From Laetmonice hystrix (taxonomy: Eukaryota): a DNA stretch of 64,000 bases. Positions 3,453 through 39,400 of this stretch are shown one piece after another; position 1 is the first letter of the stretch; every line of letters begins with the position of its first letter. Under the pieces are notes generated by a model. It saw nothing but the letters and a program-made list of their open reading frames with translations. It had not been told where the DNA came from and did no database searches. The position numbers and the translations under genes are program-made. The DNA is taken from the NCBI GenBank assembly GCA_965235115.1, contig OZ249451.1, positions 12,028,001 to 12,092,000 on the forward strand, written 5' to 3'.

Positions 3453-6400
3453 CTGATAACAAAACATTAAAAAATAGATAAGACATAAATAAGTGTAACG
3501 CTGGCACAGGTTAGAATGGTAAAATAGTCCGCGCGGAGTCGCTTCCTTTTCCTAAAATTATGTAGGCCTACTTTAATAGAGAGCCGTGTACTACGTGACT
3601 GCTGTTCTTACACGTGTGAGCGATAATATGTGTAATCATTGGTTCCGTGAAGCTAAATGAGAGGTCACTTTAGCGTCAAAGTTTATATGTACTTGTGATA
3701 CTATAGGGCGAAACTTTGTAGGCCCCTGTAGTTGCTCCATAGGTTGTCAACATCGCACTTCACAACGAACAATTAGGGTTAGTATTTTCACCTGTGACCG
3801 ACAGAACTTAGAAGTGCTTCTCTGGTTATTGGCACGTTGACTATGAAACCTTGGATGACGGCCAGGGTGGTTATCGGTCGAGTATAAAGAACGCTACTCG
3901 GGTAAACTCAACGCCCTCTACAGGTCATCGAGGGAACGAAAGGGAGAGAACTGAGGCAGAGCGTTATTTCCTCATGGTGACTTTCCAAGAAAGTCCTAGG
4001 ATTAGGTTTGAGGCTTGGGAATGTGTGACGTCATATTGTTAGCTCCTCCCACCAGTGTCACGGGGGTGTTACCATGGACACAGGTGGAGTGGAGAGAACA
4101 GAACGGTTTAGTATATAATCACAGAGAGCATGGTGACTCGCTGTGTGGTTATGCCAGATAAACTTGAAGTAAACACTTTTGTTTCCTACCATTTCCAGAT
4201 GGTGACTAGGACAATGACGAGGAACAGCAGTACAGCCACCGCAATGCCAACGTACATAGGAATCAAATCCGCTAGGGTTCAAGGAAAAAAAGTAAATTAA
4301 TCACCTGTTAACCCCCATAAATATTATCAATATAAAACTTTAGGCAACATCCTATTACCTATTCATCGAACTAGCTACATGGGCGGATAGGGGAGGAGTA
4401 AGGACCTTAAGGCGTCGATGGTTTTTTTGTTTGTTTGTTTGTAATTGATCACATTGGGCCCCCTCTCTAAGATTCTAGATCTACCCCGATCTATAGACGA
4501 CACGTGTCTAAGATATGGCCGTATCAGGTGGGACATTCATTCAGAAGAAACACTGCATGAAGTTACGTGTGATACAATTTTAAAGACTTATATTTTAAAT
4601 CTGAGCAGAGTGTCATATAATGGGGCAGGATTGGAGACCAGAGTCTATACTTACGGTCCTCCTTCACCCCCGAGGTCGTTTCCGTCACTGTGTTATCTGT
4701 CGGCAAAGGAAGCAGAACAGAATGTTTACACTAAGATCATAGAATCATTCAAATAGTTGAAACATTAATATCAGATCTCTGAAACTGTAAATCGCTTAAG
4801 CAGCAATTATACACTGTACATTATTTGTGGACTTGGACTGGGACTGCTATACGTAACACGCCATACAAATGTGTGAAGAAAAAGCAGCCGGTAGACCTCA
4901 GTCTTCACCGAAACATGTTTTCATGAATCCCCGATAAGAAAACATCGAGGGGACCAGACATATACTTAAGTCTGGTCTTATACAGATACAGACACGCATG
5001 CAAGTATCACACAGTAAGACTTGGCCAACCGTCAGCAAAATGTACAATGACTTTCCTATCTGAGGACAGAGGAAGAACTTTGGGGGAACTTGTAAAACAA
5101 GATCTATTGAAGACTATTCTTTACCATATGTCCTCACCATGATCTGTAATTACATGTACCTCCTGGTCTTTGACACAAAGAACGATTAACTTGAATGACT
5201 CCGGGGCAATTCCCCATCCGACCAGGACAAAGCCTGAGGTATATGTGATTCAGGCTTCCCTCCTTATTACGTTCATACCTTTAGGTGACACCTAAATGGG
5301 TTAAAAGATGATCTCTGCTTACCGTCTGGGGCAGCGTTCATGGTTAGTCTCTATCCAGATTCCGAATCATCTGCAGAACGCTGGACTGGTGACACATATT
5401 CACGCAAGACGGTGGGGGAGGGTGGAGGGAAGGCAAGAGGGAATTCAATGCAAATCTAGGTCGGTCTTTCATGACTAGCTCAAGGCAGGTGGTTTTTCTA
5501 CCCTCTTATATTCCATGAAAGGTGGGTGGTGTGATGGAGCGGATGTTTTATACTAATTGACGGGCCTAACTCATCTATCATCTAACAGATCAAACGTGGT
5601 ACTTGGCACCCCATGAATTACAGTCAAACCGTACCATCAACATCTGCTCAGGCCCCCTCCCACTTCTGAAAGTATTTACCCCCGTCCTAGGACAAAACTC
5701 GCCCAATTCCTGACAAACTTCACGGCCTCCCCCGGGCGCATCCAGAAATATGCGACCCTACAGGTCCAACCCCAGAACATCATTTTGTTTGTCACAGTTA
5801 TCTATGTGAGAGGATGGTCAGTTTGTGTCATGCGTCTTGACTAGCTACCCGTCACGTTTCAGTGAACACATACGGCTTTCCAGGCGAGGGGAGGGTTGGT
5901 AAAAATGTCACAACCAAATCACATGGTTCACAAAACTCATACATACGTGGAAATCACGCGAGAATTCCTGGGAATTATTGACCTTTAACGTCGATATCCT
6001 AACACCCTCCCGCGGTCACCTCAAGCTTGGCGGAATCGAGGCTTGCCCGGGTTTAACATTGCCAGCTTTAAAAACAACCTGTTGTGCATCTTTTTCTTTT
6101 GGCAGCAACGAAACCTTCATTGTTTACCCTTGAAGATACATTGAGAATATAATATCAAAACGTAGATTTAGATCGGGCGTTGCTCACGCAGTGATCTGTT
6201 TTCTAATCCAGAACCATTCTGGCAGCTTTCGGCGGTTTTCATTCGACAATGTTCGGATATTTCCGTCGGCCGGAGCGCGTGATTCATATGATTGCCGCTT
6301 GGTGGCCAGAGTGGACCGGTTTGTTAGAACACTACTCACCAGGTGGCGCGCCAGGCGTGGACTTGGTGGGGACGCCGGGAGATTCCGGGCCGCCACCGAC

Positions 6401-9400
6401 GCCAGGGTCGATCGGGGGGACACCTGGCTCGAGGGTCGTACGACTGGCGTCAGGTATAAGCGTCGTCTTGTCGGCTCCTGGAGAGACGTCACAGAATCAC
6501 GATGATACAATCAGACAAATCAAAGAACGAAAACACGGCAATATCAGCTACCGACATAACAGAAGCACAAGCTGAGAAGCTTAGATCTATACACTCATCC
6601 CAGACCGAATGGCATATGGACCTCCCAGCATGTGGCTGCATTCAAAGCAGCGGCACAGACTTAACCCTTATACCTTCAAGGACCCCTCAAACACTGACAT
6701 ACGGTGGGGTTACCAAGGTTTTATTATAATGACGTCACCAACTTCTGTCTATTATACTCAAACAAAGATCGAGACACGGATCCTTACCAGACACGAACAT
6801 TAGCAAACGGTTAACTGAGCAAGACATTAACTGAGCGGTCTATGTTGGCATAGCGATTGGCAGGTGGCTTTCCCGAGGGTTTATTAAAGGCTAGAGTTCT
6901 CTTTCCCGGGGTTTTATTACAGGCTAGAGTTCTCTTTCCGCGGTTTTATTGAAAGCTAGAGTTCTATTTTTAAAGGTCCAGTTTCAAGTGTCTGCATCCG
7001 ACAGAGCATAATGATGGTTTGCACTGTTATAAAAGATTATAGGTATATCTACCTATGTCCTTTCAAATCTCCTACTCGGCTAAGTGCTTGCTCCATTCTT
7101 GGTGCCCAGAACAAGGACGTGGTGGACTAGATTCAATGCATTGGTAACCCCATGTCAAAAAATGAATACATGATATAATTATGACACTGTATTAAGCCTC
7201 TAATGGACTTAATCCCTGTTTCTTCCTGTCATCAATGACGTGGGTTCGCCCGTGACGTGACGTCAGACCGTATTTGGAAGCGTTCCTTTCCTAGCCTCAC
7301 ATCGTCCGCGTGGAGACGCAGATGTAAGGTTTGGGACAGAGGGACATTAAGAAACAAAATCTCCATGATTCCGGGAGGATAAATGACTCACAGAGCCTAC
7401 ACGTAGTCAGGTCAATCATGGTTACCATGCCAACTGATTTATTACATTACCGCACATAACGTCACAATAGAACATGACAAACATTACTGTACAGGGGTCA
7501 AACGTATCGGGAAACTGTGCAAGGAATTGTTTTACAGCAAAACTGTGCTACCTAACCAGACAATAGATTTGTTGTGTTGGGAATAATGATTTAAAACAAT
7601 ATTATAAATAAATATCTGTGGCCGCCAGGTGGAGTACGGCAAAGGTAAGAGTTATTGTTATAATAATAATGAGGATCCGGGGATTTATTAATTAAATATT
7701 ACAAGTAACATTGACAACGAGACATCGTGTAACACTGACATTGGAAGGCGATTAAACACTTGAATCAACTCTTTAATGTGGGTCTGATATTGGTGTATTA
7801 GAGAGTTAACACTACATTGTGGGTGACTGGTGTCCGTTTCATAGGTTACCATGGTTACGTAATAATCATTGTCGTGCCACAACGTTTTATCAGATTTATC
7901 AATGGCAAAACGTTTTGATTCCTGATGACGAGATGAAACGGACCCCATAGCAGTTTACTTTCATTAATAGTTCTATGTGAATACTTTCTGTTCCTACTCG
8001 ATTAGATGATAGTAAATTTGAACTTCATTAACATTGATAGGCAGGAGTTACTCTCATTATTTCTGAAGCTTTGCGTGACTTGAGCTTGTGACGATCGCGC
8101 GGTTAAGACTACTCGTAACTTCGGTCACTTGAACCTTACCTCAATGACGAGCGATTTTGGCACTAGGCGGCGCCACCTACAAAGCCTCTACTGCACGGAG
8201 TTAACGCTGATGGCATAGCACAGGGGTAGACAAGATGGGAATGAAGCAAGAGACGCCAGTCAAATCTCCCCAACTGTCCGCAATGCTTCCTAATGGAATA
8301 ACTTTAAGTGCACTGTTTAATTATATACCAATTTAAAAAGAAGAATAGAAAATAATTGACATAGACACAGGCGAGGAAAGATAAAACGACAAACAAGACC
8401 AAGACGTCGGAATAGCTCTACTACTTAACGTTAACGTTTCAGGTGAGGGACAGGACCCTAAAAATCATGCCTTTTTTCGAAAACCAGTGTGAAGTGAATG
8501 GTTTTGTCAAACACCAGTGGGAACAGTCTAACGTATCCCTTCTCCCCGAAGCCTAATAGCCTCAGTTTTCCTTGGGAACAGTCGGGGGGGGGGGGGGGGG
8601 GGGCTAGATGCTCACAATTCAAATATATAAAGATAGAAGGGGAGAAAAAAAATATGGTAGGCCTAATATGGTAGAGAAGGATGCCACCAGGGAAAGTAGG
8701 GCCTATCCTACATTGATCTGGTCTGAGAACCCGTGGTATAAACTGTGGCTGGACAGCATGCGATAGGTGTGAAGGGTTGACTGGGTGTTAGTAGTTTCAG
8801 GCAAGCTATATACGCACTGGGGATGGACGATACTGTTGGCATAGTTGGCCCACTCGTCGGGGACACAGACAGTGACGTCACACTAGGCCATGTCGTGCCG
8901 ATAGGGGGCGTTGTTGTAGTACTTGTTAAGTCAGGGATAGACGTGCCTGTCGTTGTTGTTGTTTTCCTTGAGTAACGCGTACTGGCTGGAGTTGTAGTTG
9001 TAGATGTGGTCGATGATGATTCCGTAGAAGGTGTACTTGTTGTAGATGTTGTAGAAGTTGTTGATGTTGTTGTAGTTGTTGTAGTTGACGTTGTCGATGT
9101 TGCTGAGTATTGCAACACAATCGTTCTTTGAGTATTGTAACTTCGCGTCTCAGTTAGACAAAAAATACTCGCCAAAACCGCCTAGTCGCACGCATGGGCT
9201 TCAATTATTTTTTTTTGCGTTTTTTGCGTTTTTTTGCGTTCTTATACATCTTTTTTAGAGATCCGTTAACAGTTATTTTTACATAACAAGCTTTCGGCGC
9301 ATGCGCACCCATGCAATACACATACTTTGATAATGAGTCCCGAAAGACAATGCGACAGTTAGGCAAAGCTGTATGAAGTTGGACGGCGATATGATTAAGA

Positions 9401-12400
9401 GCAATTGACAGACAAACAGACAACACACATAGGCTTCGTATCCTCGTTATGAGACCCAATCACTTCTGGTGAAAGCGATCACCGCAAAGTTAAAGCCAAA
9501 GTTACCAGAAGAAGGTTGACACAAAGCATATCGGGGTCATATTCAGGGTTTGCTTCTGACTTGGACTAATTATTTAATTTGTCCAACGGTCTAGGCAGAC
9601 GCATGTGCTACAGACGCATCACAACAAATGTTTTAAAGAGATTTGGTTAACCAGATCCCAGAAGAGGGGGTAGGTGTGGGTTTGAGCAGGTAATTGGAGT
9701 CAATTAGTCACACGAATTTTGTAAACAAAGGGAGGAAGTTGGTAGATGGCAGTCTACCAACACACTCTGCAAGACGCCACTAGTGTCGCCACCTATCACC
9801 AAACACATGAACCTCCTGCGTCCTCACGTGTCTGACCTAGGTCTACGTAATACTGGTTTCGTGCGAACACACTGATTGGCTGTTTTAGACAAAACACTTG
9901 GACAAGACAATATAATACATTTATACGCCCATATATCCGTCCGCCCATACAGAGCTATCATATAAACGGACTTGGGGACTGGGATTCCTGGAATTCCATA
10001 TCAAAACTTTTAGATTTGGACTCAAGTTCGTCCCTGGTTGACCTTGAGGTCGGTGTCGAACTGTCGATCTTTTAGTCCTGGCGTGACAAGCGCATGCGTG
10101 TATGGTTCGCGCATATCGTCAAGGCAACACAAGGGGTCAACAACATACATGCATGCTAGAGCTGCCATTGCACGACGTCATCTCAACAGGAAACATCTAC
10201 TCAAACTCAGGCTAGGTAATAATTTGTGTGTAAACTTTGCTAGAAGAAATGAGGTCACCCATGTAGGAAATCTGGTGACTGCAACTGGGAGATAACTGGT
10301 TTACCCCTCCCCCCTCCCCAAATAAAATAAAATTACAAATACATAATAAAATAAATCATTCCTTCTTTTGTTCCTGCTTTTGTTCCTTTTGTTCCTGCTG
10401 CCCAAACAGACATATGTTTTTCATATGCTACATCTTGTGTTGCTTTAAGACTTTACATATGAAAACATTGGTACGATCCAAGCACAAGGGGCATTAAGCA
10501 AGAAATTGGAGGTCCAGAAAATCGCAAGTAGAAGACTGAGGGGATGGGGTTGAGACGTCGCGCGCCTTCCAATTCTTACATATCCTAGCTACGTATACTG
10601 TAACCAACTTGCTAACTTTGCTTTAAATCCTTCATTTTGTAATCGCGCATTTAGCTGCAGCCTGATACTGATAGAAATACCCTATAGGTTTAAACTCACC
10701 TGGAAGTGCTGCTGGTGACGTGGTTGGACTTGAAGGTAGGGGACCTAATGTAGGTTGTGTCGGTACAAGCGCTGTATCAAAGAATGAAGGAAAGAACACA
10801 TTATAGATATATGCATGTGACGTATGGGGCACCGGGTGAACCTGACTGTGCGTAGTGCACATAGTAGTCGCTAGGGGGCCCACCTTTACGTGAAACCTTT
10901 GCATCCTGTTAATTTAATCCAACGTTAAATTTAAATATTTCCGTTGTTTTTGTTTATCACTAATCTCTTTTTTAACTGCCACTTTTCCAGTTTCTACTTG
11001 AATATCCCTATTTGCGGCCATTGCGACATGATTAGGCCTACTATTTTTGTGCAAAGATAATATTGGGATTCTCGAGTGCATTTGAGGATTTAGGGTTCAA
11101 GGTATCAGTGTATACTAATTTGATCACTAAATTAATTTTCTTCTAATCAATGCTCGGTTGCTGTCTGCCAGGGAGTCTAAATACTAAGGAATTTAAAAGT
11201 ATATATTAAACAGCTAATTATAAATGTTCATACGGTCATATGTAAACATTTCTCAGACCACAATTATTATGTTTAAGATGGTAAGTACCAAAGGCAAGTT
11301 GTTTTTTATTTGTGTGTGTGGGGCATTACAGTCGCACTGTCGTGAATTTAAGGAATGCATGCAAAATAAGCTACACCTGTAACAAAGTTACAAGGTGTCA
11401 AGTTACTCTGTGATAAGGTAAACAACCCTGCTTCTGATGTGACTTAGTGAACAGCCATGCTTCTATGACAAGGTGCACAGCCCTCTAGCCCAACAACCAC
11501 CTCTTCTGTGACAAGGTGCACAACCCCCTAGCCCAACCACCTCTTCTGTGACAAGGTGCACAACCCCCTAGCCCAACCACCTCTTCTGTGACAAGGTGCA
11601 CAACCCCCTAGCCCAAAAACCTCTTCTGTGACAAGGTGCACAACCCCCTAGCCCAACCACCTCTTCTGTGACAAGGTGCACAACCCCCTAGCCCAACCAC
11701 CTCTTCTGTGACAAGGTGCACAACCCCCTAGCCCAACCACCTCTTCTGTGACAAGGTGCACAACTCCCTAGCCCAACTACCTCTTCTGTGACAAGGTGCA
11801 CAACCCCCTAGCCCAACCACCTCTTCTGTGACAAGGTGCACAACCCCCTAGCCCAACCACCTCTTCTGTGACAAGGTGCACAACTCCCTAGCCCAACTAC
11901 CTCTTCTGTGACAAGGTGCACAACCCCCTAGCCCAACCACCTCTTCTGTGACAAGGTGCACAACCCCCTAGCCCAACCACCTCTTCTGTGACAAGGTGCA
12001 CACCCCCCTAGCCCAACCACCTCTTCTGTGACAAGGTGCACAACCCCCTAGCCCAACCACCTCTTCCGTGACAAGGTGCACAACCCCATACCCCAAAAAC
12101 CTCTTCAAAAGTGGTGAAATAATAGTCATGACGTCAAAGATGCATGGTTTCGCATTTTACTTTTAACCCACTACTCTTTGTGAAGAGTTATTCACATACG
12201 ATGGGCTATTATTATAGTAGTCAAGAAGCGGCAACATGACATTTGCATTTAGGTCGATGTAGTCGGACGTTTAGGTGAATCACCGTATCTCTATCCAGTG
12301 GCGGTATTAGACTATTGTTAGTACTGTACATTAGAAGACTTTGCCATACGTAGTATACCCTATAGATTAACTAGAGGAGATTTGGGTGTCCTTAAGACCT

Positions 12401-15400
12401 CGGCAATGGACATCTTCATGTAATCTCTTTGGATATATAGAGGGAGCACCAGTCAATAATACCGTGAAACGGATGAACTTTTCTTGGATCGCAAATATTT
12501 TCAATCTCCTGGTAGTACTGACTGGGCCATTGGAGTTTCATGAAAAGCCAGAGATAGAACATGATGGGGCGACTCAGTACCAATGAGGGGGTACTTTGTC
12601 CTACGAGGTGGGGTATTCTGCTCTAATTTATGCACTATTTAGACTGTCTAACATTATAACTAGACATCAAGTTTCGGCATATCTAAACTACGTTATAGTG
12701 TTGATATAGCCGTCAGATCATTAGATATCGCAGGGGTACTATAGGTTTACGCAATGCTAACCCAGTGTCTATTATGACGTCAGAGCGTTCGTGGGCAGTT
12801 AGAAAGCATGACGGTCAGTGATAATACTGTCATTTTGTTGTCAGGTAGGGGCACTACGATCATACAGGAGGACTAAACCATGACACTGTCATTTACTTAA
12901 ATTATTTACCTCTGATATATTCTGTAATATTATACTGAATGAAGTAATTAGTTTGGTAGGGATTTTACAAGTTGATGCCGTGTATCATACTTGCCTGTTG
13001 GCGACGGTGGGAAGTATTCTACGTGTACATAGAATAAGACATTATTTTTCTTAAATATAAATGAGAATGGCTTAATGTCCACATCATGCCTGAGTAGACC
13101 GATTAATCCAATAATCGTACAAAGTACATGGAGGCTAACATAGGTAATTTTTATGATTGGCTTCTCAACCTTAATTGTATGGTTCAGTATGAAGCATAAT
13201 TAACGTCATTTACATTAATAAAATGTAGCATTTAAAACTTGATGTACAAACCTTTACTCTAGGTAACCCCTAACAACCTTGCTATGCGTTGACGTCGACT
13301 TCCGGTTTTAAGTATAAACCGGAAGTGGTCGACGGTTTCGACCTTGACCCCCTTGACCTCCCTTTGAATTGACACTTACTGGTGTTGTATGTTTCCGTAT
13401 ATTTTATTGTGTATGCCTACATATACAGTACGTGCGAAATATCGAGCTACATTATGGTATCTAAATAGGGCCTACCGGTAACCGGAAACCCAGCACTGTC
13501 AAAAGCTACGTTAAGAATGTGAAGAAAACGTGAATCCGATTCACACCATCCAACCAACTATTCTGTTCGGAAGAGGAGTTGGGGCGACTGAGAACAAAAT
13601 ACTCACGTCTTTCACAAATAAAACTCTGGTGTTCACTGCAGCCGACGTCGCTCCATTCGTAGGTAACTGAGACCTTGTAACTCATGACGACACACTTCTC
13701 TCCCTCATTGGATGGAACCCCTCCGGCCCAGGGGGCAAACCGCAGCCGGTCACCTGTCGGAAAACCAAACCATTCACATGTTATCATTTTACGTCCAAGG
13801 CCCTCGTTGGAGTCACCCATGATTAGGGTATGAATCTTTTTTCTGAAAATATTAGGGGTTAGTGACAAGTTCTTGGCTGCGAGCACATCCATTTTATAGG
13901 CTGTCCTCGTACGTGCAGATACATATGAAACAAATGAAAGAAGAAGAAGAACTTTGTTGTCTTTTTGACACGAAAGCTTTTCTTCAAACGTTAACACCAT
14001 ATCAGAAGAAGAAATGTTAAGGTGAATGGTTGGCAAGTTCAACTCTAATACCCCGCCTTGACCTTGCTCATGTTTGAGCTCACCGTTAGCCCAGGCCCAG
14101 TTGACCTTGGTTGCTCCAAGCCAGAATATGCCCTGAACGCATGGCAGAACTTCCCGGATAGCGTCGTGACTCGCCTCCGATGTAATCTCCAGTAATCGAG
14201 CACCCTTGGCGAAACATCCGTTACGGGCTCCGAACCACGTGTCCTCGGCGTACTGATCGTAAGATATACAAGCCTCTGCCGTACTCGTCAAACCTTTCAA
14301 CTGACATTCGCTCTTATCATAATCTAGATAAATAAAAGCAAACGATTCCATCATCGTAACTATGAATGACGTAACTGAGTTCAATAACACCCCGAGGGAG
14401 CGTCTCACAACCATCGTTATATCTTGTAGGTTAAAATCCCAAATAAACATGGTTTTAATGCTACATTCTGATACACAACTCTTTTCTATATTTTAACGTG
14501 TTTTTCAGCCACTTAAAATGGAATACATATTTCTGAAAAGAAACATTGAAATACATAGTGTGCTAACAATGTTAGGGGACCATTATGATTAGCTTGCAGC
14601 GACCTCTGACGACTCTCAAAGAAACTATATGTAACGTTCGCCAACATGTCTATTTGATATCGTAACCCTACACGTGTCGGTATCCATGGAGACAGTTACC
14701 ATACATGCAGATGTACTTGAATTTCCTGGCGCACCTCTCGCTCTGCCACCGCCAACTCTCGCTGTCACTCTCGCACTTGTAAACCATGCACTCCATGTCA
14801 TCAATCCCGCCGCTGCCGCCAGAGGGCGACCCAAAGGCCCACCCGCCGGACCAGATACCTGGGGTCAGAGGTCAAGATGTAAGCTGACAGAACATGAAAA
14901 CTGTTGCAATGGGTATTTAATATAAACTTATGGGAAGAATAAAAAAATTCTTATATAAAATTCACGGCTCCAAAGTGGAGTGAGCCTGTGCAACGCTTCG
15001 TATCATGTTAAGTATATGGCGGGTTGCGTTCCTTTTCGGTTACCTGCTATGTAAAGCCGGGTACACGAAAGGTGATATAGATACACTAATTATAAAAGAA
15101 ACCCCCAACAGTTGTGAAATAATTACCGTCCACCAAGAAGACCTGGTTAGAGCTTGTGCCTCCACAGTTCTGGTCGAAGTCTCCCAGACATGGCTGGGTG
15201 CATTCTGAACTGAATCCATACGACCCGAACGAATTGTCACAGTTACAGAGGATGCCGGACTGTGGCAAAACAAGGAAAATACATTGATGTAGATTATCTC
15301 ATATATTTCTAAACGCATAGATTACATATTGTAGTATTTCTAAGAGCCATTTTAAGAGTTAGGATACATTTAAAGTCGAAATAGGCGCTTATACGAGTAG

Positions 15401-21400: not shown

Positions 21401-24400
21401 TTGACACAAACTTATACATACAATTAGACCTCAGGGAACGCTTCGACCCAAAGGTTACTTTCACATGGTCTCGGGAAAATGTTGGATCGCCAACTGGGTA
21501 ACGTGCATGTGTATTATACAGAATAAATTTGGCTTTCACAATGCTTGAATCCACTCTGAGATTTTCCTTTGCGACTTTCCTGGGAGAAATTGGCCACAAT
21601 GGGACTGCCCATCTTAGAGGAACATGTCATGGTTTTACATGGTCTTCAATATCGGAAGGTTTCCTTCAAAATCGTAAAAAGTATGCAGCATGCAGACACG
21701 AAAAATGACAATGATAGCCGTTTTCCTCGCGAGGTGACTTGATATAAGGGCCTTCATGCAGAATCCACCGGTGGCTTCCCTCTATATCATGTGGAAATGG
21801 TAGAGAACGTGGCATGAGACAACTATGGTTGTCTCTGTGTCTCAGCCACGTGTAGTTTTGTGACTACATATGGAGGTACATGAGGATTTTGTGCGAACAG
21901 GACGCCTGCCTATATTATGTCAGATTGTAAAATCATCAATCCTGAATTTTTCTTTCATACGCCCTGCCATGCCCGTGACCAGGGGTCAGCTGGTCTGCAC
22001 GACAAAGAACTGGTCTCCTCTCTGCGGTCTGTTGTCCTTACATCAAGAACCCATCCCAATATTCTTGCTTACATCTCAACGTAAACGGTAAACGTAAACC
22101 GTAAACGTAAACGGTGAACGATTCTCAGAGTCTTCTCTCCTTCACAACCTGTGTGCAGGTCTTAACTGACAACTGCTTTAAACTGACAACAGTTGTCAGT
22201 TTAGATCTAGGTCTAAACTGACAAATAATGATCACTATAGTGCTGGAATGTTAATCACTAATATGAATAGATTCTCCATGACAGGAATGTAGCCGGCATT
22301 GCTTCTCACATCAACCAAAAATATTGGCAGTGCACATTTTGTTGTTTTGTGTGTCGCATCTAACAAAATACTTGGAATACCTGTAAGAACAATATTATTA
22401 GAGAAAATCATAAGTGGAACCTTTATTTCTATAGTGCCTTTCACAGAGAGCAATTATCGTTAGATACTGTCATCATCTGAATCAGTTCAAATTAGTGATT
22501 ACCATTTCAGCGGCTAGTAATCATTATTTGTCAGTTTAGACCAGGATCTAAACTGACAACTGTTGTCAGTTTAAACCAGTTGTCAGTTTAGACCTGCACA
22601 ACCTGTCGTTAGCTTGTCGTATCGTTAATGTATGTTCAATGGTGATTTTAACGGACGACAGGATAACGATAGTTGTGAAACGCACCCCTGTGTCGTTCAC
22701 TGGACCACCCAGGTATGCCATCACCTTGAAATACTATCTCACGTACCTACTGGATAACAGATAACTTCTCATGTCTTTAGGTTCGTACACAGGGGGAAAC
22801 AGTTTTCAAGTCGACTGGCGCTTTTGTTTATGAGGTCATATTTCCATTAATTTGAAAACGAACCTGCTTGCCCAAATGGGTATATTGTACGGATTTATTG
22901 GGGCAACGACTACTCCTCCCCCACCCCCGGTGATTAAATCCTGTACGGAAATAGATGAAGTAGTGCATGTAATGAAAAGGTAAGTTATTGCGATACGATG
23001 CTGTGAAATCAACGAGGGGGCGCCCTCTGTGGGCCGTTTCTGGTACATGTACTATGGGAAGTGTAGGGCCCGAGTGAGGATGTGGTGGTGGGGTGGGGGT
23101 GGGGGTGGGTGGGGGGGATTAGGAGACAATCCTGACGGCGACTGATGGTCTCTTACAGATAACTGGCAAGGGTTCTGTCACGTGTAACATTCACAGATAC
23201 AGAATTACACGCCCCGCGTTTGATAACCTAACGGAGTTCTGACTTCTTATACCACATCCAATCCGTGCTACCTCCGCTGGCTTTCCCTTCCCGCCCCAGT
23301 TTCCCTGCACCCCGACATCGCAAACTGTCAGAGTTACCCGCTCCCAGGGAGGTAGATGAGACAGGTACGTTACGAGTTGGTGGAGATCCAACTAGGCTGA
23401 AAATCCAAGGTAATACCCAGGGTCAAAGGTCAAGTCTAACACGCAATATGTTCCCCCTTATATGGGTATAGGGTGCGGTGAATGGGGTAGGGTACACCAC
23501 CCTTTTCGGCCGCAGGTAGGGGTTGACTGTGACCTCGTATGTGTACCGGGATTCCATGGAGGAGCTCCCAGTAAGCGTAACAGAAACGTCCCAAATGTCC
23601 ATTGACACTCAAAACATTCCGTTTAATTAACTTTGGGGTACAAATGCACGTAATCCGTGTAAAATAGCAGAGTAGTTAAAATGTCCGTGTGTACTCTGGA
23701 GTGGGGTGATGGTCACTGACCACTCCAGCACAGTTTCTAGTCTAAGTAAAAAGTTCTCACCGAATTTAGATTAAATGTCTGGGAAAGTACTTAAAATTAC
23801 TGGGGGGTTCGTATGACCCGGTGGAGGTCAGAGGTCAAACTGGCCTGAACCTCCACACGCAGCGACACGTTTGACATAGTGCAGCTGTTCATGAATGTAT
23901 GTAGTTTGTGTGAGAAAAAGATGTCCAAAATGTCTCTGTGGCTATAGTATAATCCAATACACCGGGAGGGTGGGGGTCGCTGCGATCGGAGGTTCAACCG
24001 GCAACAAGTTCAAGACTCTCTTGTATCCCGTCTCCATCCATCTGATCGTAATCCCATGGAACGAGTAGTGCCAAACGCTGCACACTCCGAATCACCACAA
24101 CGTCCTTAGCACCATTATATGTCTCTGTAGTCTCCCCGACCTTGTACTGCTTATAGGAAAGGGACACCTTGCGGACCTTTCCATCTGCACCTGGAAAAAC
24201 TTCTTTGATGAGGCCAAGTCGGTACTCGCCTCGCAGGGGGTTACTGTCTGCAACAATCACCACATCTCCCGCACAAAGATTGCGATGTGTGGTGTGCCAT
24301 CTCTGCTGTATCAGTAGGGTTGGAGCATAGAGCTCCGTCCACTTTCTCCAAAACTGCTCCGTGACAGCCTGCACCAATCCGTAGCGTGTATGCAAGTTCT

Positions 24401-27400
24401 CCTGCAACTGCCAACCACCCGGATTCTTTGCTGTGGCGCGACCCAATAGCAGGCTGTTGGGTGTGAAGATGGTGACATCCGAGTCATCCTTGGATCGTAC
24501 TCCAATTGGCCGTTCATTCAAGAGGTTAGCAACCTCTGTACAGACTGTCATGAGCTCTGGTACAGACAAGCGCTGGTTGTGGACAGCGAAGTGGATTGCC
24601 CTCTTGGTGCTCTTCACCAGAGACTCGACAGCCCCCTGATGCCATGGGCTGTCTGCCGGCCCAAAGATCCACTTCAGTCCGCTGTCTGAACCTTTTTTCA
24701 CGACCCTGTCACGGTCAAGGCTCTCCCAAGCCTCCCTGAGCTCCCGTTCTGCACCAATCAGCTGGGATCCTGGGTCACTGTAGATGGTGTCTGGCCAACC
24801 ACGGATGCACGCAAAACGGCTGAGAGCCATGAGGAATGAGCTGGTGTCATACCCAAAGACAACTTCGATGTGGACAGCTCTCATGACCAAGTCAGTGAAA
24901 ATGACTCCATATGCCTTGCCACTGGTGCGCTTCTGTACTTCTCCCCTTACACGGTAGGGGCCAAACAAGTCCAACATGACCTTGCTGAACGGCGGTGAGG
25001 GTTTGAGCCGGGCTTCCGGCAGTGGAGCCATCTCCTGCTTCAGGAAGACGGCCTCTCTCAGTCTGCATTGCTGACACTGATGTTTGACCGACTTGGCCAG
25101 CTTGTCACCATGTGGAACCCAGTACTGCTGCCGGAACTTGGCCAATGTCGCGTCTCTGCCACCATGCCCAGACCTGTGTGCACGCTCCATGAACAGACGT
25201 GTTCCCCGATGGCCAGGTGGCAATAGCTTCTGTAGGTTCGAGTCCAATGTCATGGCGTTGTGTTGGATCAGGCGAGTTCCAACTACCCATTGGCCTTGAC
25301 CATCCTGAACTGGTAGGAGCCTCCCAAACCTCCCACCGCTTCGTCCTTTTCTGTCTTTTTTGTTTAGTTCTTCTTTGATGGAGGCTTGCAGGTCACTCAC
25401 AATGAAGTCCTCAGCATCTCTGAGATCCTGTGGACTCACCAGTACGATCCTTCCACCATGAAACGTCTTGTGCTTCGCAATGTTTTTAATTCGGGCGATG
25501 ACCCAAATTAACTTGTTGATGTCGCTGACCCTGCTGTAGTCAATGAGGGCAGCACTCGCCTTTGTTGCTGCAGAGGAGTAGACCTTCTTCTCTCCGGGCA
25601 GTGGATCCCTCGTCTGTAGGCCAAACTTCAGACCCCACTCCACAGCAGGCTGATAGAGAATTGGTGGGCCTTTCCACCAACTCGAGTCCTCATCAAGATC
25701 CCGAGGCAATCGACCTCTGGTTAGCCAGTCTGCAGTGTTGTGCTTTCCAGCCATCCAAGCCCAGCATCCCATTTCACCGTCTGTTGCTGCTTGGATTTCG
25801 CCCACGCGCACACCTTCATAAACCTTGAAGCGAGTGCTTGTCTTGTTGATCATATTCAGTACCGTTTCTGAATCAACGATTTGCAAAACTTTCTCATACT
25901 CGAATCTTGTTTCCAGTTCGATCACTTTCCTCCCCCTTTTTGACAGGAGAGCTGCGTTCAGCTCCATCTGGGGAGTTGAGAGTCGGTTAATTGGGGCTAT
26001 CCTACACTTTGCCATGATAAGCCTGCACCAGTAGCTCCCATCCTTCAGCTGCCACCGGATGTACGCGGCGAATCCATAAGCCAAATCACTGCCATCACTG
26101 AGAATTATCAGCCAGGGGCGTCCAACCGCGTCTCGTGGGTGCAGGCAGCGTTTCAGCTCCAGCTGTTCCAGCTCAAACATTGATGTGAAGAAGTTCACCC
26201 ATTTGTCCCTTAGATCATCTGGAAGTTGGTCATCCCATCCAAGTTTCTTCATCCAAGTCTCCCGCAGGTAGATCTTCGCCCATAGCGTGAAGGGACAGAC
26301 GAGTCCAAGTGGGTCATAGATCCTCATCACCTGCTCCAAAACTATTCTCCTTGTCAACACTGATGGTAGACATCTAGGGAGGTCTTCTTTCGATAAATCT
26401 GTCTCTGTATGCACTCCTCTCCTTTTCTTGGAAAAGTTGAGTGACACCTGATACACTATAACGTCCTCTTGTGGCTTCCAACCAAGGCCAAGCACGCGGA
26501 GATTTTCATTGCTGCCTTTGAGCATGTCCCTAAATGGCCTCCCGCTCTCCTCTTCTGGAGCTTCACCATCCAGGTCACCACCTTTCCGCGAGCCAGCATC
26601 GCCACTGAACTGCCAACACTTTACCTGAAACCCGCCTTTGGAGAGCATGTTTTCGGTAGCTCTTGCCACTTTTAGGGCCTCAGGCTTGTCCTTGAATGAG
26701 TCGATCAGGTCATCTACGTAACTTGACTTTCTTAGCAGGTCAGCTGCAGCGGGGCTGTCGTCTTCAAATCTACTTGCCGTCTGATACACGGCCTCAGAGC
26801 TGATAGCAGGTGCAGGGGTGTCGCCCATGTTGACACGCTCCATAACAAAGACTTCAGGCTCCTTGCTCTGATCCAAACCCCTCCATAGAAAGCGATGACA
26901 ATGTTGCTCCAGAGGCTTCAAGTAGATGGAGTTGAACATCTTTCTTATGTCTCCCACTAAGGCAATTTCCTCCTCTCTCCAACGAAGCAGTATGCCGACC
27001 AAGTTGTTCATATAGCAGTCTGGTCCCTTTGCCAGGCAGGAATTCAGGGATGTCCCCTTGTAGACTTGACTGGAGTTAAACACTATTCTCACTGGTGTGG
27101 ACTGTGAGTGAGAGTTGACCACAGCTAGATGACTGATATAAAACTTTGGGCCCTTCCAGCTCTTCATCTCCTCCTTGGACAACTTACGCGCCACTTTCCG
27201 GCAAAGCATGTCTTGGATCTGTGCTTCGTACGTAGCTGCCCACTGATCATCCTTTTGAAGCTTGTGCTCCGTGTTTCTCAGTGTCCCCAAGGCTGCACCA
27301 TAGTTGTCAGGAAGCGTAGCTGGGTCCACTAGCCAGGGGTAACTTGTTATCCAACGAGAGTTGACGTCATCATACTCCAGATTGTCTCGTATCATTTTCA

Positions 27401-30400
27401 ACTCTTGTTCCTCTTTGAATGAGTAAGTCTGCCCCACTGTCGGACATTTTCCACAGCGACAGGCACCACAGCGCGGGGTCGTCTCAGTCGCAATCTCTTC
27501 TCCTAAAATGAAATCAGTTATCCGCCCCTCAGCACCCTTCCTCCACACCGACTGTGTGGTGTGTGCAGCCGATGGCTGATCTTTATCAGCGTCCTCACCT
27601 GGTTCATCACTCAAGGCTGGCTTGCTTTGGATAACCATTGGTGCTTCTTGTACACTGACATTAGGATCTTCACTTGGTTTACTATCCCTCGTGTCCACGG
27701 GATCGTCAAATGAGGCTGCATCTGATGCACACCTCGCCGGCTTCATCACTGAGAAAGTCTCAGATGTCCAGCCCCTCTCGAACTCCGGATGTGAAAACTT
27801 GCGTAACTGTACATTGAAGGAATCGCTCTTCAGTCTGACCTCATGAACCGTCTTGGCCAGGTTCACATCCATGCACGTGTCTTCCTTTAACTCGGGGTGA
27901 GCTCCTTGAAGGCAAATGCCAAACTCTCCATTCATGATGCTGAGATGATCTCCCGCCCTAATGATTTCATGCTTGGGATGAAGACCGAAATAATCACAGC
28001 CCAGTAGTATATCCACTGATGTTGACCGGCGCTGGAGTGCTTCTGGTTCATAGTCGGGAAACAGTCTTGTTATCACCTTGAGATCCAACTTGCTCACTGG
28101 ACCTGTTATTCTGTCCATGCCAAAAGCGATGATCTCCACTTTCCGTCCAGCCTGGGTCATCAATGGTATCTTATACTGACAAGTTTCATACTGTTTCTCC
28201 ACGCCACCCATTGTTGTAACATCCAACGTGAGACGCTGCAGTTTCTTTACCTTGAGTCGATCGGCAGCTTGATGAGTGATGTAGGTTGTGTTGGAGCCAC
28301 CATCACAAAATACGGTAACCGACTTGCCACTCCCCGAAACTGCTGCGTGCTGTATGGGATACAGCGCCATGGTGGGACTCTGTGCTGTGTGACTCTCAGC
28401 TGTTGTACGATGGTAATCAGACTCCCCAGTACGGCCCATGCACAGCAGGGGGTGATGTCCATGCCTGCCACAGACCGAGCAGGCCCCGTTTACAGGACAC
28501 CTGCTCCTCCGGTGGTTCCCAAAACATCTAAAGCACGCACCCACTTGCTTCAAAGCTTCATACTTTTCATTTCTGGGCATTCTCTGAAATTCCTTGCACT
28601 CCTCAGTCACATGCTTCATATTATCTCTGCGGTGAGCTGGGAAAGCACAGTTGTGAAACTTGATCTGTCCACTGCCCTCACCGTGGTGAGACTGACCACG
28701 TGCTTGCTGGGCAGAGATCCCTCTGCGACCTTCGTCTCTACCTCGGTAATTACAATCTTCTCTTCTTTTATGTTGCATCTCAGCCATTCTCATGACAGCA
28801 GCACGTTCATCGTCCAAAAATGTCATAAAAGGCACAAAGGGTCTCATCCTCTCACCTTGCGTAAGTGTGCGCTGTTTCCTAACCCATTCAAGCCTCAGGT
28901 GCATTGGCAGAAGTGAACTGATGTGGTCCACATCTCTCATCGTCAACGCGTTTAACTCTCCCAGTTCCTCCAGCTGGCTGTATGCGGCTTCCACCTCGTC
29001 AACAAGCGCGATGAGGCCACGGTAATCCTCCGCGTTAACATGTTTCAGCTGGATGAGACTGTCTAGTGCCGCCTGGACACTTGCACTGGTGTCATTGTAA
29101 TAGTCTTCGAGCTTTCTCCACATTATATCATATGCCTCGGGCTTGGTGATATACACGGACTTGATTCTCTTACTAGCCTCTCCTTTTACGCTCCTCTTCA
29201 ACTCATACGCTAGTGCCTTTTTATTTTCATATGTGTTTTCAGCTAGCTCCCTCCAGACAGATCTGAATTCTGGCCAGTCTTTACGCAGACCAGAAAATGT
29301 GGGTAACGCAATCTTGGCTAACCTGATGTTACTGTGGGCGCTACCCGTGCTGAACGCTGCATGTGTTGGGCTGCTGATGAACGGTTGATTAATCGGCGAC
29401 CATCCTGCGTACGGTGCATACACTGGAGCAGTGGCAGGCCCAACGGATACCAAACTTGTCGCAGGTACATGTATAAAGTTCTGAGCAGCTGACACACTGG
29501 AGACACAGGCTGGGCTACCTGCTGGGAGTGATGCCAAACTTGTCACAGGTATAAAGTTCTGATCAGCAGACACACTGGCATGGGCAGGGCTATCCGAAGT
29601 GAGTGATGCCAAACTTGTCACAGGTATAAAGTTCTGAGCAGCAGACACACTGGCATGGGCAGGGCTATCCGAAGTGAGTGATGCCAAACTTGTCACAGGA
29701 ATAAAGTTCATATCAGCAGACACACTGGCATAGGCAGGGCTATCCGAAGTGAGTGATGCCGAACTTGTCACAGGTATAAAGTTCTGATCAGACACACTGG
29801 AGACATAGGCAGGGCTACCTGAAGTGAGTGAGGTGCCACCGCCCAACGCAACACCAGCTGTTGTTACTGCCATTTTCGCCTTGCTCCTGGTCCACTTCAA
29901 TTCATCCACATTCGCCATGACTCGAGATTCGTCTTCAAGCTGTTTCTTCAGTACTTGGCTGGCAAGACTCTTTAAACAACTTCTTCACAAACTCAAGTCA
30001 GGTGTCGTAGTAGATACAATAAATCACGGACTGTAGATGTGTCGTTCTGCAGCACACTGATGGTCATATGCGTATGTCACAGTTCACTTGGATGTGCTGA
30101 GGGCAGGCCGATCAGCAAGTTCGCATAGGCCGTGGAGTCACTTTGGCTGTAGATCCGCTTAGTTAATTAAACTGTACCGGGATTCCATGGAGGAGCTCCC
30201 AGTAAGCGTAACAGAAACGTCCCAAATGTCCATTGACACTCAAAACATTCCGTTTAATTAACTTTGGGGTACAATTGCACGTAATCCGTGTAAAATAGCA
30301 GAGTAGTTAAAATGTCCGTGTGTACTCTGGAGTGGGGTGATGGTCACTGACCACTCCAGCACAGTTTCTAGTCTAAGTAAAAAGTTCTCACCGAATTTAG

Positions 30401-33400
30401 ATTAAATGTCTGGGAAAGTACTTAAAATTACTGGGGGGTTCGTATGACCCGGTGGAGGTCAGAGGTCAAACTGGCCTGAACCTCCACACGCAGCGACACG
30501 TTTGACATAGTGCAGCTGTTCATGAATGTATGTAGTTTGTGTGAGAAAAAGATGTCCAAAATGTCTCTGTGGCTATAGTATAATCCAATACAGTATGGGT
30601 CATGATATCTCAGCGGTCCAAGCGGGTCCACATGGAAAGATATAAAGTACATCTAAACATGCCCGTTTACTGACTGCCATTCAGGGGCAACGGTTTATAA
30701 TAATGTGAAAAAGTAATAGCTAAGGTCATGACTGAAATCAGAATTTTATTCTCCTCAGCATGATTTATTGACTTGAAGTTTTCCCTCTTAACGTAGATCT
30801 GAAATATGCGCCATCATGGCTTAAAGAAGTTGTGCTCACATAAAACTACACGGCCTGTGTATATAAACAAAGTGTCCGGGCACGGCTGTTCTTAACCTCC
30901 ACTCGCCGAGAGCTCTCCTGTTTGGTATAACTGACAGATCCTAAAGCGGACGCATCTACCACAGACGATCATCTCTAAACACAATATTTATTCATTTTAT
31001 CATGTTTTTCCACATCATCGTTTGGAGAGGTAATGATTTACCGAACTACAACTCGAGTTTTGATTGGAAATAATTCGAGTTTTCGCCGGCACTTTATCCC
31101 AAAGACACGCGCCTGCTATAAGCTTTGGTATGGTCGGCGCCTGTCTGTACATGGGGAAACCAGTCATAAATAGACAGTTTACTGTTAGACAATATTGTCT
31201 TAGAAAACAGCGGATGACCTTTAAGTTACTGAAATGATCAACTACGTTGTTTTCTGACCTAAGTCCGTTTTGTATTTAAAGGTCCTCTTTTTCAGTTTTC
31301 TTTTCGATTTACGCAAAGATGACAGCAATGATGAAAGTTCAAAGAAATCTCCGGTATTCTCGATCATTAGGCCCAATTAAAATGTCCGACTGGATGAGAA
31401 GTGGGTTCTTTCTGACGTTTTGGGGCCAGGAATATATTGTATATTGGCGAAAGCGACAATAGGCTCACCGTAGATGGAACCCTATACATGTATATTCTTA
31501 CCTTAAAACGGTAGGGAAAAAACTATGCTTACAATTTCATACGTGTCATCCTGAAAACCATGACAACCTCCTGAAAGGGGTTAATATAAAACTTGATCAT
31601 TAAGTTGGTAAATATAAGGCGGAGCACTTTACCTACGGTTAGCAATTACCAGACAACATCAAACGGTATGCAGCGTAAAGGTTAAATAATAATATTATAT
31701 ATGGACGGTTACAGAGATGATTTTGAATTGCTCTAACCATTAATGAAAACTAATCTGAATGGTTTGTCATTCGACGCTCCGTCAAGGTCTGTGACATTCT
31801 TTGGTCCACTGAATTTGGACATCACTATGTACGCATGTCTAACCGGCACCATAGTGCAAGATATAATCAAAACTCTTGGGTCATAATTTAAAAAAAAACA
31901 CAATTGAATAGAAATGTAACTCGAACATTTAGGCGCATATTTTTGAACAGGCCGACATAGAAGAATGTACATACAAGCAATTGCCCTTGATCGTTTAGGC
32001 ATTAAAAGAATTTCGCTAGCGCATTTATCGTGTGACTTTGATAATGGTACTGGACAACTCCTAATGGAGCATTTACTCTGATCTAGGAAGAAACTAGCTT
32101 TACCGTTAGTTAAAAAAACGAATAATGATTTTTTTTCTATAAATGTACCCCTCTATAATTTATTAGTAAGACGTGCCTCACCTGGTCTGCAATATTCGGC
32201 AAGTATACCAACTATATGTGATCCTTTCAAGAAAGTCTTGTTCAATTTCTTTATGAAAAAAAAGAAAGTCTTGTTCAAGAGATACAATACATTGGTGTAC
32301 AATCGGACGCGGAGATGGTACTTATCCACAATTACTCATGACACCCACCTTTTGTATGGTACACACCTTATTGCTAATGTTGCGATAGCAAAGTGTTACT
32401 TCAGTCTCCCGATTAAAGAGCACCAATTGCAATCCTATCTCCCGTTGGAAACTGACACCTGTCGAATTTAACAACAACGGTCTGGGATCCTAAAAAAATG
32501 TCTGAGTTGTGGTCTGAATAGACAGGTCAGGATGCAGCAGGGTAAACTGTAGACAAAGTGTTGTCTTACAGGTTGTGCCTACGTGTGGCTGGACGGACCC
32601 TGGTAAGGTATAGGGACGCACAGAGGGAGGTTGATATTGAAAGTTTGTCCAAACCAAGTGTATAGTTGTGACATGTAAACGTCTCACACAGGGACATGGT
32701 GGGCACTGCTTGCTGTTCAACATCAGTTTGAATGGTTTAGATGAGATCTTGTGGCATAGAGTGAGTGAATGCATGGGGGGGGGGGGGGGGATGCCATATT
32801 GCAGCCATACTCGGAGAGAAAAAAACTTTCAAACTTGCTCAGTCATGGGACAGTATAGCCTACTCTCACAGACACGGCTGGTCATACCAATACTTTGGTA
32901 GCCCAGTTGCGGAGCACTGGGGAAGGCCAGTAACAGTTGCGGAGCACTGGGGAAGGCCACAGAAGCGGTATAGAGGAGTGATTCAAATACATCCGCTTCA
33001 TAAAGCTGATCCTTCAACCTTCACCCCATGCGTCACCCCTTACAAACACCTAGGGGTGCTCACATTAAGGTTATAAGTCTATGCATGCTCCTACAAGGGC
33101 AAGCACTCGGAGAACATGACGAAGACACGAAAGCGCTACATGTTAGCTAACAATTACTCCTATTTGTTCATTCCTAATAAGTTGGTGGCAAATGTACTCG
33201 GAATATAACTTGTCGCTTAAGATCACGACGTTCTGTTTTGAATGGATTCCTTTTGGTAATATCTCTAGGCGCTATCAATGGATCCTTTTATCCCATGTAG
33301 AATTTCCTTAATTCCCGCTTCACAAGGAATGCGTTGTTAGTTGGTTAAAGAGGATCTTTTTTAGCAGTGTCGTCAGATCGGGCTATATTTGTGAGGAAAT

Positions 33401-36400: not shown

Positions 36401-39400
36401 CCGACATGAGATGCGTCTTTAATATTCCGACAGTACCTCACAGAGACTGCAGTCCACGGATCGAGTAGCGCTGAAACCATCGTTTGAACCCGCTGCCATT
36501 GGATGTTTACATTGACGTCATAGTGACGTCGTTTTCCTGAGCCAATCGCAGCTGCTATCTCAAATCGAGCACAACGTTGCTGTCTGCCTGACAAACTAGC
36601 CCACCTGCTGCATTCGCTAAATGTAGGGTTGTATGATGAGGTCCATGACTGAAGAAATACTTCTGGTTTTTAAAGGGTGAGGGAGATGGTTCAGTTTGAT
36701 TCACAGCTAGGTTGTTCACAGATTCCACTGCTCACGGAAACAACTTGTAAACTACTCTCGCTATGCTGGCGACAATGTAACAAACATGCCTTGCGGAGAA
36801 GAAGAAGAAGAAGAAGAAGAAGAAGAAGAATACATCAATACAACCAAGGATAATACAGACGAAAACATGCCTAACTATAAGGCGAACAAAGAGGGAAACG
36901 CGAAGAACCATTTAAGCTGGCCTTCTGTCAAATCTCCGAAACTGTGATGGCTTCTGCAGCACTGGTATCATCCTCATTATCGTCGTAACAAGCCACGGGA
37001 TACCAGAAAACACCCTCTCAATGTATAGCCGTATAGGGTATGTTATAGCAGCTCTAACTGCAACCCCTATTTCAGGATAATTATCGTGGCTACCGTCCAA
37101 CTCAAACTAGGGTAAACATTTAACAACACAAGATTGAATCTGCATAACCTTTAAACAGTGTTGTTTTTCCAGGTAGAAAGAAAATGGCAAAAGCCCACAA
37201 GATATCTGGGACAGATCCAAAAGATGATCTAGTTTCGTGTCTGTGCTTGGAATCTTCATCTCGACGGCTAGTAATTACTGTCGGAACGTTCGAGCATTCT
37301 CTCACGACATGACAAAGATATTTACTGACGTTCAGTTCCAAGTGAGCATTACTGGTGAACTACTGCCAGAAGGAGATTAAGAAAAAGGATTGTTCAGACA
37401 TGGACTATCCTACGTGACCTTGAAAATTACCCCGTACACAGATCACGATCAGGATCTGCTACAAGAGTTGGATGACCACGTGCTTGGTATTGTACATTGT
37501 TTTTCTCTCAAGGAACCTTTGCTGTGGTTCTTCTTAATGTATGTATGTAAAGAATCTGTTCGTAGCCATCAACAGGCAGCCAGAGAAAGCATAAATGTTG
37601 ATGAGGTATCTTGGACTCCAGGAGGTCTTCCAAAAAAGGTCCGCTCATTGTTGTGTATAATGGTGGGATGGTGTGGAAATAAACGAGAGTATATACCATT
37701 TCAAGAAAAATATTTAACTTGACATGATTGTCAATAGGGTGTTGAGTTTTACCCGAGGGTTAAAGGATAATGGATGGTTTGGTAGGCTACCAGCACATTC
37801 AGCAGGCTGTTCAACCCCCCACCGGGTTAAATCAAGTTTATACTAGCTCTAACTGAACACCGACAATTAGGATCATATTTCCTTTGACTGGTAATCCGTT
37901 ATAACACGTTCCGTTTCCTATATGACGGGGTGGACACAGACTGGCAGTAAATCAAATCGTGAGGTCATCCACTGACAGGTGGCATCCGGGACGACAAAAC
38001 AACAGGGCTGTGTGCGGGAAGGAACAAGGAACATCTCTACGTAGACTTATAGCTATAAAGATATAGATAAAGATTAACCTATAGATAAAGATAATGCTTC
38101 TAGATAACTGGACAGTCGGATAGATAAAGGAACAGAATCAGGTAGGCAAACATACGTTCAGATGCAGATGATAAAAGAACAAGACTATAGTCATAAAGAG
38201 CAATACATAAACAAACACTATAGTCATGAAGAGCAATAAATAAACAGGTAAAGAAAAGTCTAAAATTATGCATCATAATTTCAAAAGTTATAGAAACAGG
38301 TCTAGTCAGTTAGAAGCGGACGAACTAGTACACGCATAATATAATAAGTTTGACAAAGAGCAGAATGATATATGTGTTAGACATTGTGTAATATTCTCTA
38401 GACTGCGCCAGGCCTGAGGGGCTGAATGGATAAAACTGTCGAGCTGAGATAAAGCACGGATTCAATCGTTGATTTAGAACAAAAAGAGAGCTCTACTGGT
38501 TATGGCAGAGCTTGCGGCGGGACTGGACCAGCACAGCGAGCTACCTCATTATATCATCAATAACATGAACGGTATGGCATACCAAGCGAGCCAAGCTGGT
38601 CCTGCTCGAAATCCACGTCTTGGAATCTTTAACTGTAACTTAGGGCATATCGCAAACCGGGGGCGTTAAGACGGGGATGCACAGCAGAAAAATGGTCCTG
38701 AGAAGATCTAAAAGANNNNNNNNNNNNNNNNNNNNNNNNNNNNNNNNNNNNNNNNNNNNNNNNNNNNNNNNNNNNNNNNNNNNNNNNNNNNNNNNNNNNN
38801 NNNNNNNNNNNNNNNNNNNNNNNNNNNNNNNNNNNNNNNNNNNNNNNNNNNNNNNNNNNNNNNNNNNNNNNNNNNNNNNNNNNNNNNNNNNNNNNNNNNN
38901 NNNNNNNNNNNNNNNNNNNNNNNNNNNNNNNCATCATAAATGAGGCGAAACATGACGTTCATTATACCGCTTCCGGTCGACACATGTCATTTATCCTTTA
39001 TTATCGCCCACTGTCTCTCCCATCCCTGACTCGGCCCAGAGTTTGCCGTATTCGTGAAGACTGAACTCTACGACCGCGGTATTCTGACATCATAACAGAC
39101 ACACCTGCTGGATGATCCATCCCATAATGTGACCAAGGTCACGTGGGGCAGCGAGATTTACCAAACGTAAAGTAATGTCAATGCCAAATCACCCCCACTC
39201 AATGCCACGAGTTTGTGAACGATTTTCCCGACTATGGCGCGGGAGCTTATATTGGCACAGGCCCTCAAGGGGACGATTTCGTATCGTTTCCACTAAGGCA
39301 TGCTGTGTATAATTTAAACTCGTGCTATTTTTTGCCGGTATTTCGTGATCGGAGTAAGAACATCAGGCGAAGACCAATGGGGTATGGATGGGTATGTGCT

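Follow-up and report, generated by a model that had tools for sequence, protein, structure and literature searches.

A candidate self-primer in the long terminal repeat of a BEL/Pao retrotransposon from Laetmonice hystrix

How does a long terminal repeat (LTR) retrotransposon begin reverse transcription when the sequence that follows its 5′ LTR lacks the TGG with which a tRNA end would pair? This question is raised by a 64,000-nt stretch of the Laetmonice hystrix genome (assembly GCA_965235115.1, contig OZ249451.1, positions 12,028,001 to 12,092,000 of the forward strand; hereafter the window), whose minus strand carries a complete BEL/Pao LTR retrotransposon of 7051 bp at 23542–30592. An initial inspection of the letters (the sequence-only reading) had proposed that the lineage primes as Tf1 does, by folding the start of its own RNA back onto the site next to the LTR. 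Our analysis of the element and its relatives supports that proposal through co-variation of the two paired arms, the absence of TGG and the distribution of the feature within a single clade. We consider it probable that a BEL/Pao clade starts minus-strand DNA synthesis by Tf1-like self-priming.

A post-LTR site and its complement within the LTR

The window element is bounded by two 420-nt LTRs, the 5′ LTR at 30173–30592 (TGTATTGG...CCCGGTACA) and the 3′ LTR at 23542–23961, both of which have TG...CA termini and which are identical at 419 of 420 positions. A matching 5-bp target-site duplication, CATAC, lies upstream at 30593–30597 and downstream at 23537–23541, and an uninterrupted gag-pol open reading frame (ORF) of 1974 aa extends over 23994–29918. 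Because the LTRs are nearly identical, the duplication is preserved and the reading frame is unbroken, we regard the window element as young and apparently intact.

The terminus of the 5′ LTR, CCCGGTACA, is joined directly to GTTTAATTAACT (30172–30161), the predicted primer-binding site, which abuts the LTR without a TGG. Its exact reverse complement, the predicted self-primer AGTTAATTAAAC, is found inside the same LTR at 30252–30263 on the minus strand, where the homologous segment co-varies in relatives. The first base of this arm is the 91st from the LTR end, leaving a spacer of 79 nt between the arm and the boundary. The pairing comprises 12 bp and extends on neither side, being stopped by an A/A mismatch outside and a G/A mismatch inside. 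A second copy of AGTTAATTAAAC is located at 23621–23632 on the minus strand, at the start of the repeat region (R) of the 3′ LTR. These observations agree with what had been claimed of the locus: no TGG after the 5′ LTR, an exact 12-nt complement 91 nt before the LTR end (30263–30252) and pairing that ends at the boundary.

A match of at least 12 nt anchored at this position was obtained in one of 20,000 dinucleotide-preserving shuffles of the window LTR. Across the window, ≈0.09% of all 12-mers have a reverse complement within the preceding 420 nt. When the anchor was moved, the longest match was 8 nt over 200 downstream offsets and 4 nt in the host flank.

Pairing and co-variation in related elements

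To compare the site among relatives, we fetched the DNA for eleven full-length BEL/Pao polyproteins recovered by protein search, together with one partial metagenome locus. Where an element retained both its LTR pair and its target duplication, the two together defined the LTR boundaries. In seven families, one of them that of the window element, the post-LTR sequence is reverse-complementary to a segment of the family's own LTR, and in all seven the duplex starts at the first base past the CA of the LTR. The closest relative, L001 (77% protein identity to the window element), pairs over 23 nt across a spacer of 79 nt. Longer spacers separate the arms in L008 (63% identity; 15 nt paired, spacer 136 nt), L002 (58%; 14 nt, 151 nt) and L003 (57%; 11 nt, 201 nt). 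L010 (62%) pairs over 10 nt across 73 nt, and L012 (59%) over 8 nt, with 2 more after a 1-nt bulge, across 182 nt. Each family was tested against 5000 shuffles, control offsets and host flanks. Shuffled sequences matched in 0–14 of 5000 cases for the window element and five families and in 133 of 5000 for L012, and among the elements with pairing, no match exceeded 9 nt at the control offsets or 5 nt in the host flanks.

The two arms change together. In a matrix that compares each post-LTR sequence with its own LTR and with the LTRs of the other families, the own-LTR match is 8–23 nt long and the others reach 3–7 nt, with the exception of L003, L010 and L012, which have one post-LTR sequence in common. 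A per-position table of pairs records changes on both sides at duplex positions 3, 4 and 7–14. Between the window element and its sister L001, the LTR arm changes from TA to CT and the post-LTR site from TA to AG at the paired positions; L002 and L008, also sisters, pair perfectly even though they differ at all positions beyond 6. Compensatory co-variation, which the sequence-only reading had singled out as a check, is thus positive in seven families, each post-LTR sequence fitting its own LTR.

A canonical TGG site is absent from all 10 elements examined (the window element and nine relatives). The window copy is therefore not a mutant of a tRNA-primed element, an outcome that relatives with a canonical TGG would have suggested. 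Three further loci, L004, L005 and L009, group with L002, and one post-LTR sequence is common to all four. L005 preserves the LTR end and this L002-type sequence, on a contig that begins too late to include the LTR arm; in its 5′ untranslated region (UTR), between the primer-binding site and the start codon, several tandem-repeat copies (unit roughly 60–90 nt by eye) occupy positions 130–400. The Logan contig L009 was considered as a transcript that might mark the start site and was rejected, as it ends exactly at the LTR end and is genomic. The scan of metagenome contigs returned only two partial loci, and no relative was found in a scan of viral contigs.

Phylogenetic analysis places the pairing within one group. 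In a maximum-likelihood tree of 15 polyproteins, eight elements, namely the seven families and the decayed copy L004, form a single clade with 100/100 support. Outside it stand L013 (52% identity), L007 (50%) and L011 (46%), none of which has a TGG or, when the whole element was searched at any offset, a self-complement; the LTR ends of L007 and L013 are inferred from terminal motifs only, and those of L011 are firm. The L007 locus has three element copies in tandem with single shared LTRs over positions 1–12482, either a real array or an assembly effect. L011, whose LTRs are 1456 nt long, has the post-LTR sequence GTCGAACCGTCGGCCG at 3976–3991, likewise without TGG or self-complement. The reverse complement of GTCGAACCGTCGGCCG contains GGTTCGA, a tRNA T-loop motif, and priming of L011 by an internal tRNA fragment is possible.

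Proposed priming mechanism and competing explanations

If the LTR arm is a primer of the Tf1 type, its first base should be the 5′ end of the transcript. A TATA-like box, TATTTTA, is present on the minus strand at 30291–30297, with its first T 34 nt before the predicted primer start, in reasonable accord with the ≈30 nt first estimated. L001 has TATTATA 36 nt before the start of its own duplex. Relative to the window element, L001 carries 13 extra bases between the box and the segment homologous to the 12-mer, and its duplex extends 11 nt further upstream; the distance from box to duplex is thus 34 nt in one and 36 nt in the other despite an 11-nt shift in the duplex start. If the start site sets the 5′ edge of the duplex and each cycle renews the post-LTR sequence by copying the primer, near-constant TATA spacing is to be expected, and the spacing in these two elements fits a duplex whose 5′ edge is the transcript 5′ end. 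The sole difference between the two window LTRs (30275 versus 23644) falls in this interval, between the TATA-like box and the 12-mer and 12 nt upstream of the predicted primer start.

The 12-mer also contains ATTAAA, as had been noted, at 30258–30253; it is the only poly(A)-type hexamer of the window LTR, which has no AATAAA. Downstream of the arm, the 79-nt spacer at 30173–30251 on the minus strand would comprise the rest of R and the unique 5′ region (U5), and it is predicted to form two hairpins enclosed by the duplex between primer and primer-binding site. For the RNA from 30263 to 30150, the minimum-energy fold has −43.3 kcal/mol (z = −5.4), with the 12-bp duplex closing both hairpins. 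The same closure of R-U5 by the duplex, together with hairpins, appears in the minimum-energy folds of all seven families, each a single-sequence prediction.

We propose the following course of events. Transcription would start within the 5′ LTR, at position 30263 or a neighbouring base, ≈34 nt past the TATA-like box, and nucleotides 1–12 of the RNA would fold back over the structured 79-nt R-U5 spacer onto 30172–30161. The RNase H of the element, or another nuclease, would then cut past nucleotide 12 (after 30252), leaving a 3′-OH on the C opposite the first post-LTR base, from which reverse transcriptase would extend. The first base copied would be the last base of U5; with extension starting there, the LTR boundary would coincide with the duplex edge in every family. 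When the plus strand is made, copying of the retained primer would rewrite the primer-binding site from the primer, so that changes at the RNA 5′ end would pass to the primer-binding site, and duplex length would track the distance from start site to cut. Retroviruses are known to copy the tRNA primer that they retain, and Tf1 reportedly does likewise, as the title of Atwood-Moore et al. 2006 implies. Complementarity anchored at the LTR boundary, co-variation of its arms in seven families, restriction to one clade and the lack of a tRNA-type site are features of the elements themselves; from these we infer where transcription starts and the RNA is cut, that the duplex acts as primer and that the primer-binding site is rewritten.

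Several observations weigh against self-priming in this clade. The L012 duplex has just 8 contiguous pairs, and L004, an older copy whose LTRs are 97% identical, has lost the LTR arm match. Duplex positions 1–2 and 5–6 (G-C, T-A, A-T and A-T) are invariant and carry no co-variation signal. A recognizable TATA-like box occurs only in the window element and L001, with none clear in the other families. From the position of ATTAAA, R in the window element would be short, roughly 25–35 nt, and so would provide little homology for the first strand transfer after primer cleavage. The search for tRNA genes covered the window and the 10 fetched loci, and self-priming in the clade is deduced from sequence alone.

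The same pairing might have a different function. It could be a long-range structural stem that closes R-U5 and serves packaging, dimerisation, translation control or primer placement while another RNA primes, a role that would suit a strongly structured R-U5 closed by the duplex in all folds. Stems flanking the primer-binding site are described, in a passage of PMC5445492 that cites earlier work, as assisting tRNA priming in retroviruses. This explanation nevertheless appears unlikely to us. The LTR end marks the 3′ end of a primer, which is precisely where each of the seven duplexes begins; further along the 5′ UTR there is neither a TGG nor a tRNA-like site; and the post-LTR sequences vary by family, so that one host primer cannot serve all of them. 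Alternatively, the primer could act in trans, with the same LTR segment supplied by the 3′ R, by a co-packaged second genome or by an LTR-derived small RNA. The copy of the 12-mer in the 3′ LTR (23632–23621) lies upstream of the ATTAAA-directed poly(A) site, as such a source would, and cis and trans priming are indistinguishable by sequence alone. Against this, the distance from TATA-like box to duplex in the window element and L001 speaks for a transcript 5′ end, and the primer of Tf1 consists of nucleotides 1–11 of its own mRNA (PMC7175516); we therefore rate a primer in trans as somewhat less probable again than a structural stem.

Priming by a host tRNA, a tRNA half or a mitochondrial tRNA that matches the AT-rich site by chance would conform to the official description of BEL/Pao (PMC8742986), and half-tRNA priming is known in Ty1/copia lineages (PMC6317226). 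A host RNA could in principle also explain why the core GT..AA is invariant. Such an RNA would have to reckon with a site that has no TGG and whose variation, at positions 3 and 4 and from 7 on, is in every case mirrored in the LTR of its own family. No tRNA gene was detected in the window or the 10 loci and no Rfam family in the window, and we judge a host tRNA to be a very improbable primer. Least credible is coincidence in a 12-mer that is AT-rich and has a palindromic core, an explanation that the relatives refute. It draws on the fact that the core, TTAATTAA, is self-reverse-complementary, which leaves only the two flanking dinucleotides on each side as informative beyond the core. The shuffles, which preserve composition and yielded a single match in 20,000, argue against it, and so does the recurrence of the anchored feature in six other families with different, non-palindromic sequences. 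Self-priming from the 5′ end of the RNA thus stands as the probable explanation of the pairing.

Comparison with known elements and the tract before the 3′ LTR

The assignment of the window element to BEL/Pao, made in the sequence-only reading, was borne out by six Pfam families that match the 1974-aa ORF in the order DUF1759, DUF1758, RVT_1, Peptidase_A17 (Pao), Integrase_H2C2 and DUF5641. The Peptidase_A17 match has E = 4.8e-39, and a protein search found Pao domains in all 120 homologues among the matches listed. By the same Pfam evidence, its Pol does not belong to Ty3/gypsy and hence lies outside the Tf1/sushi group. Because a tRNA-type site is a descriptive feature of BEL/Pao and not a classifying one, membership by protein phylogeny holds without it. 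The N-terminal, gag-coding part of the ORF includes a 75-nt tandem repeat of 4.8 copies (87–89% matches) at 29467–29831, which leaves the frame unbroken. Elsewhere in the window, the minus strand has an ORF of 314 aa at 13506–14450 that encodes a C-type lectin domain (E = 4e-09) and for which the protein search found no homologue, and runs of N occupy 38716–38931 (216 nt) and 52811–52974 (164 nt).

To our knowledge, Tf1 is the only element for which self-priming has been shown at the bench. Its RNA folds so that the first 11 nt bind the primer-binding site, and RNase H cleaves between nucleotides 11 and 12 (PMC7175516); on both the pairing and the cleavage, this agrees with the sequence-only reading. 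Beyond Tf1, two further cases of self-priming have been inferred: the Tf1/sushi group, with the plant Tcn1 clade among its members, and the TAR lineage of Ty1/copia (PMC6317226). The BEL/Pao clade resembles Tf1 and Tf2 of Schizosaccharomyces pombe and the Tf1/sushi Ty3/gypsy elements in that the site adjoins the 5′ LTR and finds its complement within that LTR (PMC7175516, PMC6317226); in that group, the complement has been shown or predicted to be the mRNA 5′ end. A duplex of ≈11 nt and the lack of a tRNA site are features of the Tf1/sushi group that recur here, and a structured U5 between the arms, as in that group, is predicted by the folds. Unlike the members of that group, which are found in fungi, in vertebrates and in the plant Tcn1 clade, the protein described here is BEL/Pao and not that of a chromovirus. 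The duplex is also 8–23 nt long depending on the family, there is no polypurine tract, and self-priming is a proposal made from sequence. The window element thus probably works like Tf1, yet by its proteins it belongs to BEL/Pao and not to the Tf1 group.

Other precedents are more distant. As in the TAR lineage of plant Ty1/copia (Houba, Osr-1), self-priming would occur within an otherwise tRNA-primed superfamily and is deduced from sequence (PMC6317226); the plant Ty1/copia elements differ in domain order and are unrelated to BEL/Pao. Half-tRNA-primed Ty1/copia elements (1/2 tRNA-Met, 1/2 tRNA-Ile) also have a site that does not begin with TGG (PMC6317226), but their site is conserved and matches a host tRNA, whereas the site here is variable and matches the LTR of its own element.

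Within BEL/Pao itself, priming has generally been attributed to tRNA, as the sequence-only reading stated. The Belpaoviridae profile of the International Committee on Taxonomy of Viruses (ICTV) describes tRNA-primed elements whose site is 18 nt long and complementary to tRNA-Arg or tRNA-Gly and whose polypurine tract measures ≈10 nt (PMC8742986); in the BEL/Pao element Achilles, the site is of the tRNA-Tyr type (PMC4580426). Primer sites were not treated in a large survey of BEL/Pao in 2011. The clade shares with canonical BEL/Pao elements (Belpaoviridae, Semotivirus: Tas, BEL, Pao and Achilles) its protein domains and their order, its TG...CA LTRs and its 5-bp duplication, and differs from them in having neither a tRNA-type site nor a polypurine tract. 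Our literature search, whose scope did not extend to Repbase Reports and most subscription journals, found no paper attributing self-priming to BEL/Pao. Together with the ICTV profile, this null result fits the earlier suggestion that self-priming is not described for the superfamily, Repbase again lying outside the comparison.

The position at which a polypurine tract is expected is occupied in the window element by a conserved pyrimidine-rich tract (...ATCGCAGCGACCCCCACCCTCCCGG) at 23962–23993 on the minus strand. The 32 nt from the stop codon to the 3′ LTR (23993–23962) end in CGACCCCCACCCTCCCGG; the final 15 nt include only 3 purines, and within 200 nt the purines never form a run of 8 or more. 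The tract, consisting of ATCGCAGCGAC, a C-rich stretch and CCCTCCCGG, is kept in all eight clade members (the window element, L001, L002, L003, L004, L008, L010 and L012), where it abuts 3′ LTRs that are otherwise unalignable. All relatives in which the 3′ LTR junction was read have a C-rich tract. It is non-coding in L002 and L009, and its 3′ part persists in the outgroups L011, L013 and L007. No conserved complement of the tract was found elsewhere in the elements; the one match, a 9-mer in the window LTR, is not shared by relatives. One tentative interpretation, which we consider rather less likely than its negation, is that the clade has replaced both of its primers, using the 5′ end of its own RNA for the minus strand and the pyrimidine-rich tract for the plus strand, with self-priming thus having arisen independently in all three superfamilies. 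If that were true, a plus-strand start at a pyrimidine-rich tract would be a form of primer selection not described for LTR retroelements.

Overall, the data support the presence of what would be a known mechanism in a superfamily where it is not described, alongside a non-purine tract at the position of the plus-strand primer. Self-priming would account for the "no PBS" (no primer-binding site) output of annotation pipelines that search these elements for tRNA sites. As the window copy is young and apparently intact, the predicted transcript start and complementary DNA primer would be directly searchable in host tissue. A clade that breaks both ICTV rules, the tRNA primer and the polypurine tract, would correct the description of Belpaoviridae. 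If the proposed mechanism is true, self-priming would be found in all three superfamilies of LTR retrotransposons, which would bear on the proposal (PMC3601003) that tRNA priming was acquired late.

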